Assembly (NCBI RefSeq): GCF_006345805.1
Contig: NC_043001.1
Span: forward strand, 18,290,001 to 18,354,000
Direction: 5' to 3'
Source of the DNA: Octopus sinensis
Taxonomy: Eukaryota
DNA length: 64,000 nucleotides
Below are positions 7,118 to 7,738 of this stretch, in pieces. Positions within the stretch are counted from its first letter, which is position 1. Every line of letters begins with the position of its first letter. The notes beneath the pieces are model-generated. The model was not told where the DNA came from, made no database searches, and saw nothing but the letters and a program-made list of their open reading frames with translations. The translations under genes and the position numbers were made by a program.

Positions 7118-7738
7118 CTAGCAACATCGCCCGGCGTCTTAATTTTATTGTAAAGATTTTAAACTAAAACTTTTTAATATATTTATTTGATATTTATAAG
7201 TAGAAGATTTCATCAGTTGTCCTCGGTAGTATAGTGGTAAGTATCCCCGCCTGTCACGCGGGAGACCGGGGTTCGATTCCCCGCCGGGGAGGCATCGTAA
7301 TTCTATTGCAAACATTTTAAACTAAAGCTTTTTAATGTATTTATTTAGTACTAGCAGCATAACCCGGCCTTGCTCGGGTTTGTTTCGACCCTTTACAATT
7401 GGGATTTTTGAAAAGTAAAAATTTTGCATTATGTAGCTTATTTTCTTTAAGTGAACATTTTTCTGGTTGAAATACACCGAAAAATGGCGACACAGCAGTC
7501 AAAAAATTGTAAAAAATTGGGATTTTCACAGAAAAAAAGTCACCTTTTTTATGTAAATAATTTTTGGTGTTAACATGGTTTGATTTGATGTTTTTCTTCT
7601 ACGGAAGGAAGAGCAAGCCTTCTTCTATCATACTCTCAATTTTGGTCAACTTGCACCACAGGGTCTCGGAGGAGATTGTGTTAGTTGAAGGCTACCAAAC
7701 CTGCCAAACACAGACAACTTCAGCATTATAGAGAGAGA
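7118..7738 (-). mobile_element. Composite Helitron: family-A body (7351-7738) + spacer + tRNA-Asp + spacer + second 3' terminus
   Basis: Minus strand starts A|TCTCTC at 7738, has an internal CTAG|T at 7351 and a terminal CGCCGGGCGATGTTGCTAG|T at 7118. Removing it rejoins the flanks at A|T. Confidence 0.75.
7220..7291 (+). tRNA. tRNA-Asp-GTC: Solitary intact tRNA-Asp(GTC), inverted relative to the array, inside a composite Helitron
   Basis: TCCTCGGTAGTATAGTGGTAAGTATCCCCGCCTGTCACGCGGGAGACCGGGGTTCGATTCCCCGCCGGGGAG, identical to the main array variant. Confidence 0.95.

Follow-up and report, generated by a model that had tools for sequence, protein, structure and literature searches.

Helitrons are well known for gene capture, and what they capture is nearly always a fragment of a protein-coding gene. 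New tRNA loci are usually ascribed to segmental or tandem duplication, and tRNA-derived SINEs can pass for them; transport of an entire Pol III transcription unit by a DNA transposon is a different route to such loci. The closest described process is the 3' transduction of Helraiser, Helibat and the maize Helitrons, elements that run from TC to CTAG, enter an A|T target without duplicating it, bypass their own 3' end, carry 3' DNA along, and obtain a new end from a downstream Helitron-like terminator, as validated by empty sites (PMC4778049). About 12% (~12%) of Helraiser events involve 3' bypass, new 3' ends in bats are borrowed from adjacent 5'-truncated Helitrons, and bypass with transduction has been shown experimentally (PMC4778049).

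The nearest case with tRNA genes is the tRNA-Cys cluster on chromosome 5 of Arabidopsis thaliana, where tRNA genes lie inside Helitron-annotated repeats (ATREP5, HELITRONY1D and ATREP10B), the tandem tRNA units carry CTAG motifs, and the authors propose a role for Helitrons in tRNA spread (PMC10701932, PMC7544208). Prediction tools gave no reliable Helitron and there is no empty site at this cluster; its authors call capture speculative, and state that such an event would be the first capture of a non-coding RNA gene by a Helitron, which could not be proven there (PMC10701932). Movement of tRNA genes by Helitrons, which an earlier note on the octopus DNA considered here had regarded as not a well-described route, is not one in the literature searched either.

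Two other systems are relevant. Rolling-circle elements reportedly carry and seed satellite or tandem repeats, as with DINE-TR1 in Drosophila and the Helentron-borne repeats of oysters, in which an element is joined to a tandem array whose units travel and expand at new sites. Dada elements have terminal inverted repeats and make target duplications. They are DNA transposons closely tied to multicopy small-RNA genes, insert sequence-specifically into tRNA and snRNA genes, and belong to a different transposase superfamily (PMC3706591, PMC8869645).

The locus described here, from Octopus sinensis, contains a 621-bp composite of a short Helitron-like body and an intact tRNA-Asp gene (Table 1), and appears to resemble the Helitron 3' transductions in each of the respects given above. 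The mechanism itself is a known one; what is unusual is the DNA that was carried, an entire tRNA gene that appears to be under constraint. Rather than a protein-gene fragment or promoter, the element carries what its predicted signals suggest is a functional Pol III gene complete with flanks, and since a tRNA gene is short and its promoter internal, a few hundred bases of 3' transduction could deliver a working gene. Unlike Helraiser, the octopus copy lies close (5.3 kb) to its putative donor, and its subterminal palindrome, at only 3 bp, is a further difference. Compared with the Arabidopsis cluster, an element with ends, an A|T target and an orthologous empty site is demonstrated, and the octopus case adds retention in two species and a sign of constraint on the cargo. 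The unit differs from those of DINE-TR1 and the oyster repeats in being a tRNA gene, the array lies outside the canonical 3' end of the Helitron, and seeding is only hypothesized. As with Dada, two Helitron ends (those of families A and B, below) lie at the same tRNA-spacer position, but the octopus ends are TC and CTAG, there is no duplication, and the tRNA gene is cargo rather than target.

Anatomy of the composite insertion

The window, which is the whole stretch of O. sinensis DNA analyzed, is 64 kb long and lies on chromosome CM016863.1 of assembly GCA_006345805.1, with its position 1 at position 265 of our O. sinensis locus L002 (100% identity over 20 kb). All positions are those of the window unless another locus is named, and a vertical bar marks an element boundary or insertion point.

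Table 1. Coordinates of the composite insertion, its parts, and the related elements and tRNA-Asp array in the window.
Feature	Position	Strand	Remarks
Family-A copy 1, 393 bp, left edge of tRNA-Asp array	1436..1828	+	CTAG|T directly against first array unit
Tandem array, 18 tRNA-Asp(GTC) genes, 158/159-bp units	1829..5110	-	ARAGORN, TRF, Rfam; genes 1888-5039
Family-B Helitron-like element, 385 bp	3415..3799	+	clean insertion in array spacer, CTTATAAA|TC...CTAG|TATCAAATAAA
Whole composite Helitron-type insertion, 621 bp	7118..7738	-	between A7739 and T7117; reads A(7739), TC at 7738, to CTAG, then T at 7117; no target-site duplication
Family-A non-autonomous Helitron-like body, 388 bp, 5'-TCTCTCTC... 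to ...GCCGGGTTATGCTGCTAG-3'	7351..7738	-	TC...CTAG; ~90-92% identical to copy 1 (1436-1828)
Putatively transduced spacer 1, 59 nt, TACTAAATAAATACATTAAAAAGCTTTAG...	7292..7350	-	3' flank of the tRNA gene on + strand
Intact tRNA-Asp(GTC), antisense to Helitron	7220..7291	+	ARAGORN; Rfam RF00005
Putatively transduced spacer 2, 83 nt, ending ...AAAATTAAGA	7137..7219	-	5' flank of the tRNA gene on + strand
Second Helitron-type 3' terminus CGCCGGGCGATGTTGCTAG, 19 nt, used for insertion	7118..7136	-	palindrome CGC-CGG-GCG, then CTAG

The composite is co-linear over 606 bp with window positions 1438–2046 at 90.5% identity, and only its final 15 nt differ; homology to family-A copy 1 and its 3' flank breaks off where the new terminus starts. 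The extra segment is thus co-linear with the 3' flank of the putative parental copy and the new 3' end lies downstream of the bypassed one, as in 3' transduction. The earlier note had drawn the composite with these parts and boundaries, all of which were found. It had also identified the spacer behind the A body as the variant that follows A copy 1, and the match is confirmed (56 of 59 positions, against 1829–1887), this variant being found only beside A copy 1. The two other elements that it had cited are present as well, with the CTAG of A copy 1 and of family B ending one base before the 1829 and 3800 it had given.

The new terminus matches the family-B end (3781–3799) at 17 of 19 positions. 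Over 20 positions it has two mismatches to the B end and three to the A end, so that the near-identity to family B claimed earlier holds while its specificity to B does not; being nearly equidistant to both, the terminus is better regarded as a third variant of the 3' end that A and B have in common. The terminus consensus GCCGGGCNATNNTGCTAG occurs four times in the 64 kb, where 0.02 are expected, and every occurrence is at a predicted element end. A copy 1, B and the composite all begin with 5'-TC and finish with CTAG-3', with A before and T after. Canonical Helitrons end in 3'-CTRR with a GC-rich subterminal hairpin about 10 nt upstream of it. Every end here has the short palindrome 7–10 nt before CTAG (GCC-GGG-C in A, CGC-CGG-GCG otherwise), with a stem of only 3 bp, and DNA folding of the 3' palindromes is no better than that of shuffled sequence (z = -1.3 to +0.6).

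Several other identities were considered and set aside. Evolution of the new terminus from the start of the next tRNA (GATGCCTCCCCGGCGGGG...) gives no plausible alignment by eye, and Helitron ends match it at 17–18 of 20 positions. A Helentron-type element was rejected on the A|T insertion and the TC and CTAG ends, with no subterminal inverted repeats seen. A tRNA-derived SINE or retrocopy does not fit either, as non-transcribed array spacers lie on both sides of the tRNA, and an A-tail and a target duplication are both absent.

The solo tRNA-Asp(GTC) gene has all the canonical features of a tRNA gene, namely cloverleaf, GTC anticodon, A and B boxes (7227–7237 and 7270–7280) and T runs. It scores 60.4 bits with the Rfam tRNA model RF00005 (gathering score 29), equal to the best array copies. 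A TATA-like TATTTATAAG lies at 7191–7200, 20–29 nt upstream on the plus strand, and a T4 run (7314–7317) and a T5 run (7330–7334), 23 and 39 nt downstream respectively, fit Pol III terminators. Judged by these predicted signals, a complete Pol III unit was moved. A scan for sigma-70 promoters and intrinsic terminators was disregarded because the solo tRNA is a eukaryotic Pol III gene.

The tRNA-Asp array and Helitron families A and B

The array adjoining A copy 1 is organized in short units of one tRNA-Asp gene and one spacer. Four of its gene copies are degraded (1888–1959, 2205–2276, 4653–4723 and 4968–5039), scoring 41.5, 44.9, 52.4 and 56.7 bits against 60.4, and in one a 1-nt deletion has shortened the gene to 71 nt. 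The copies at the array edge have decayed to 41–45 bits; the transposed solo copy is fully intact.

At the orthologous place in O. vulgaris (L003 1381–2650) there are eight array units rather than 18. The dominant spacer is of the 159-bp ATACATAAAAAAAG type in O. sinensis and of the 158-bp ATATATTAAAAAG / TTAAGATGC type in O. vulgaris, while both species have, toward the right end of the array, a 71-nt tRNA variant that marks orthology. These comparisons suggest fast turnover of the array between the sister species. Spacer 2 of the composite matches, at 78 of 83 positions, the type dominant in the O. vulgaris array, which in O. sinensis persists as the final spacer; this type is probably the ancestral one. 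Given these spacer types, the composite looks like a snapshot of an ancestral array edge, with an A element, the edge spacer, a tRNA gene and a main-type spacer in order. The array-derived DNA ends ...TTAAGA, the final A being that of the A|T (AAGA|TGCC) where the next array tRNA begins; in the composite the 19-nt terminus follows instead.

In O. bimaculoides an assembly gap of 3149 N (L001 2749–5897; CM046605.1, about 15.4807–15.4838 Mb) lies exactly where the array and A copy are expected, and the tandem array itself may be the cause of this gap. The A copy 1 ortholog in O. vulgaris is at L003 992–1380. A reading of the DNA to the left of A copy 1 as the decayed remains of an array unit was rejected (Smith-Waterman score 28, shuffle mean 25.9 ± 5.1).

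Families A and B have only their ends in common, the first ~35 nt (TCTCTCTATATAAAC..AGTTTGTCTGTG) and the last 34 nt (ACAAACCTGAGCAAsGCCGGGCkATrCTGCTAG), the pattern that would be expected of non-autonomous families served by one transposase. Joining the flanks of B (CTTATAAA|TATCAAATAAA) restores the neighboring intact spacer at 79 of 80 positions, and family B is absent from the orthologous O. vulgaris array; B therefore serves as an internal control for the mode of insertion. Its presence in O. sinensis reflects either a recent lineage-specific insertion or a loss by unequal exchange in O. vulgaris. The 3' junction of A and the insertion of B use the same one of the 16 AT dinucleotides in each array unit, which hints at a target preference and, more speculatively, at growth of the array itself from a unit brought in by a Helitron. 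Family A is known from two copies, both in the 64-kb window and both tRNA-linked; its standing as a dispersed family rests on the termini it has in common with B.

No RepHel open reading frame is present within the 64-kb window, and an 85-aa frame across the 3' half of A has no match in a database of 5.8 billion proteins, which therefore seems not to include small frames of octopus transposable elements. Exact-pattern searches of the JGI metagenomes, with a 23-mer of the A body and with the terminus plus spacer, and of a prokaryote genome collection gave 0 matches, as would be expected where cephalopod DNA is not included.

The orthologous site in other octopods

The locus was compared with its orthologs in O. 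vulgaris (L003, GCA_951406725.2), O. bimaculoides (L001, CM046605.1) and Argonauta hians (L004). In O. bimaculoides the site is uninterrupted, reading ...TTTCAAATAA|CGATAATAATAAC... where O. sinensis has ...TTTCAAATAA|[621 bp]|TGATACTAATATC..., and the contiguous flanks are ...AGTTTTTATACATTAATTTAATTTCAAATAA|CGATAATAATAACAATAGCTCATG.... When 7118–7738 is removed from the O. sinensis sequence, the joined flanks align with O. bimaculoides without gaps over 96 nt with eight substitutions, one of which is at the first base after the site (T in O. sinensis, C in O. bimaculoides). By this comparison there is no target duplication, deletion or filler. The empty site is within contiguous O. bimaculoides sequence, and identity on the side of the element's 3' end (window 6799–7116) is 88%.

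In the independent O. vulgaris assembly the composite is at the orthologous site (L003 7777–8269), with the terminus conserved at 19 of 19 positions and the same right flank, ...AAAATTAAGACGCCGGGCGATGTTGCTAG|TGATAATA.... The first ~86 nt of its Helitron body and a 42-nt internal piece are gone and the tRNA is untouched. The 621 bp thus entered as a single unit with Helitron-type ends and target. The species distribution places the insertion before O. sinensis and O. vulgaris diverged and after O. bimaculoides had branched off, the latter split having been dated to 13–33 Myr (PMC13282606). The two A copies diverge by ~8–10%, which fits the octopus Helitron burst reported at a JC distance of 0.09 (PMC13282606).

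The earlier note had predicted that the flanks rejoin at A|T once the segment is removed, as they do in the gapless alignment (albeit with C after the site in O. bimaculoides), and had proposed that an empty site be sought in a sister species; the one found is exact to the element boundaries. It had also named, as an outcome that would count against its reading, a larger inverted duplication or an assembly artefact with boundaries off the TC and CTAG ends. The ends are exact, and both of these explanations are ruled out because the independent O. vulgaris assembly has the same composite, terminus and site. Exact boundaries, the empty site and the O. vulgaris copy therefore support its overall interpretation, that one Helitron-type insertion moved an intact tRNA-Asp gene with its own flanks.

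The solo tRNA genes of O. sinensis and O. vulgaris are identical at 72 of 72 positions, whereas 33 of the 416 aligned positions in the rest of the element differ (7.9%; Fisher one-sided p = 0.004 against the tRNA). This pattern fits purifying selection on the solo gene, and gene conversion from the array, 2–5 kb away, could give the same identity.

Other insertions are present nearby in the two comparison species. Directly after the CTAG of the composite, O. vulgaris has a 2.87-kb near-perfect palindromic, foldback-like element (L003 4903–7776) with arms 99–100% complementary and no open reading frame of >=120 aa; it is flanked by a direct repeat GTGATAAT(A) and absent in O. sinensis. In O. 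bimaculoides there is a SINE-like insertion of ~440 bp (L001 ~6363–6801), ~36 bp from the empty site and flanked by AATAG repeats, whose head is called as tRNA-Leu(TAG) by ARAGORN (L001 6720–6801) and which is absent in O. sinensis and O. vulgaris. In these genomes, as this insertion illustrates, a tRNA-derived SINE can look like a solo tRNA gene.

Origin of the composite and surroundings of the locus

We consider it likely that the composite arose when a Helitron took along an entire Pol III gene by 3' transduction and the whole was inserted as a unit. In the proposed series of events, a short non-autonomous family-A Helitron would have had its 3' end abutting a tRNA-Asp tandem array. A RepHel transposase acting in trans would have begun at the 5'-TC of A and bypassed A's own hairpin and CTAG, reading through 214 nt of array DNA made up of the tRNA 3' flank including the T-run terminators, the tRNA itself (72 nt), and the 5' flank. 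It would have ended at another Helitron-type 3' end, located precisely at the A|T that separates the spacer from the next tRNA, and the 621-nt strand would have been pasted in inverted orientation into an A|T site 5.3 kb away, before O. sinensis and O. vulgaris diverged but after O. bimaculoides had branched off. The product would be a solo tRNA-Asp gene that keeps the promoter-proximal and terminator flanks native to it and stays unchanged while its carrier decays. Read-through from this array edge as the mode of capture is what we infer from the arrangement, together with the identity of the donor (A copy 1 being a putative donor or sister of the composite), mobilization in trans and Pol III activity of the solo gene. 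The autonomous RepHel partner would be expected to have TCTCTCTATATA... and ...GCCGGGCNATNNTGCTAG ends.

The terminator is most simply read as a 5'-truncated Helitron remnant within the donor array, which would predict a donor junction ...AAAATTAAGA-CGCCGGGCGATNNTGCTAG-TGCCTCCCC. No Helitron terminus is present at a spacer/tRNA junction in the present-day array of either O. sinensis or O. vulgaris, so that the remnant is hypothetical; the arrays appear to turn over fast (18 versus 8 units, with different dominant spacer types). The donor may have been erased by such turnover or be located elsewhere. An alternative origin of the junction is a template switch, given that the spacer end ...ATAAAATTAAGA is loosely similar to the Helitron subterminal ...ACAAACCTGAGCAA.

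The same similarity could have mediated a wholly different history, a local inverted duplication through a replication or repair error, with no transposase involved and the match to Helitron ends coincidental or secondary. Two copies 5.3 kb apart and inverted are in the typical geometry of template switching, and Helraiser does not hop locally (PMC4778049). Nevertheless, the 5'-TC of A forms one boundary to the base, the second is a 19-nt Helitron terminus that is missing at the corresponding place of the source and whose motif is otherwise absent from the 64 kb beyond predicted element ends, and the A|T insertion is without duplication, deletion or filler, so we regard this explanation as very unlikely. 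We give practically no credence to the segment being either ancestral and precisely deleted in O. bimaculoides or an artefact of assembly: although the empty site is known from a single outgroup species whose assembly has gaps nearby, it lies in an ungapped stretch with well-conserved flanking sequence, a footprint-free removal of exactly TC...CTAG would be needed, and the independent assemblies GCA_006345805.1 and GCA_951406725.2 agree on the insertion.

A further explanation concerns the direction of events. Composites of an A body and a tRNA gene could form a family, one member of which seeded the 18-copy array (1436–5110), making 7118–7738 a sibling and not a daughter of the array edge. 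The A body would then have arrived joined to its tRNA unit, with tandem amplification driven by the direct repeat of 57 nt on either side of the tRNA. The periodicity of the array does start exactly at the CTAG|T of A copy 1, with DNA lacking array homology to the left, and the composite's own direct repeat around the tRNA (56 nt, 87.5% identical) is a ready substrate for unequal exchange. Array size is labile, with 18 units in O. sinensis versus eight in O. vulgaris, and in Argonauta the 10 kb upstream of DPH6 are free of tRNA genes, though the species is too distant to provide an empty site for the array. At its right end, however, the array passes through a diverged spacer into unrelated DNA with no CTAG-type terminus, the O. 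bimaculoides counterpart falls in the 3149-N gap and thus gives no empty site for the array, and two independent insertions within 5 kb would require a very high copy number. We view this seeding as unlikely, and 3' transduction from an existing array edge remains our preferred reading.

The position of the composite, 5.3 kb from A copy 1 and inverted, is unexpected for Helitrons. By our own arithmetic, the chance that a random insertion in a genome of ~2.7 Gb falls no more than ~6 kb to the left or right of the donor is ~4e-6 per event. Either octopus Helitrons reinsert locally, or composites or arrays are very numerous, or this was an unusual event. A single transposed composite copy is documented among the three octopus loci compared, and Helitrons may disperse tRNA genes more generally. 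That octopus Helitrons of this terminus family routinely transduce tRNA-Asp units and so founded tRNA loci including both the solo gene and the 18-copy array is a doubtful extension; if true, a rolling-circle transposon would contribute significantly, in cephalopods, to tRNA copy number and to the birth of arrays. Should more copies exist, the spread of tRNA gene families and arrays would be directly testable in octopus genomes.

To the right of the composite is DPH6 (diphthine-ammonia ligase; ORF 14525–16378, plus strand), the product of which is 93% identical to the O. bimaculoides protein, whose cluster includes the O. sinensis and O. vulgaris proteins. Right of DPH6 there is a 1747-aa open reading frame on the minus strand at 47936–53179, and the gene downstream of DPH6 carries an ALMS motif in three octopod loci. 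Octopus SINEs and microsatellites are abundant in the remainder of the window.
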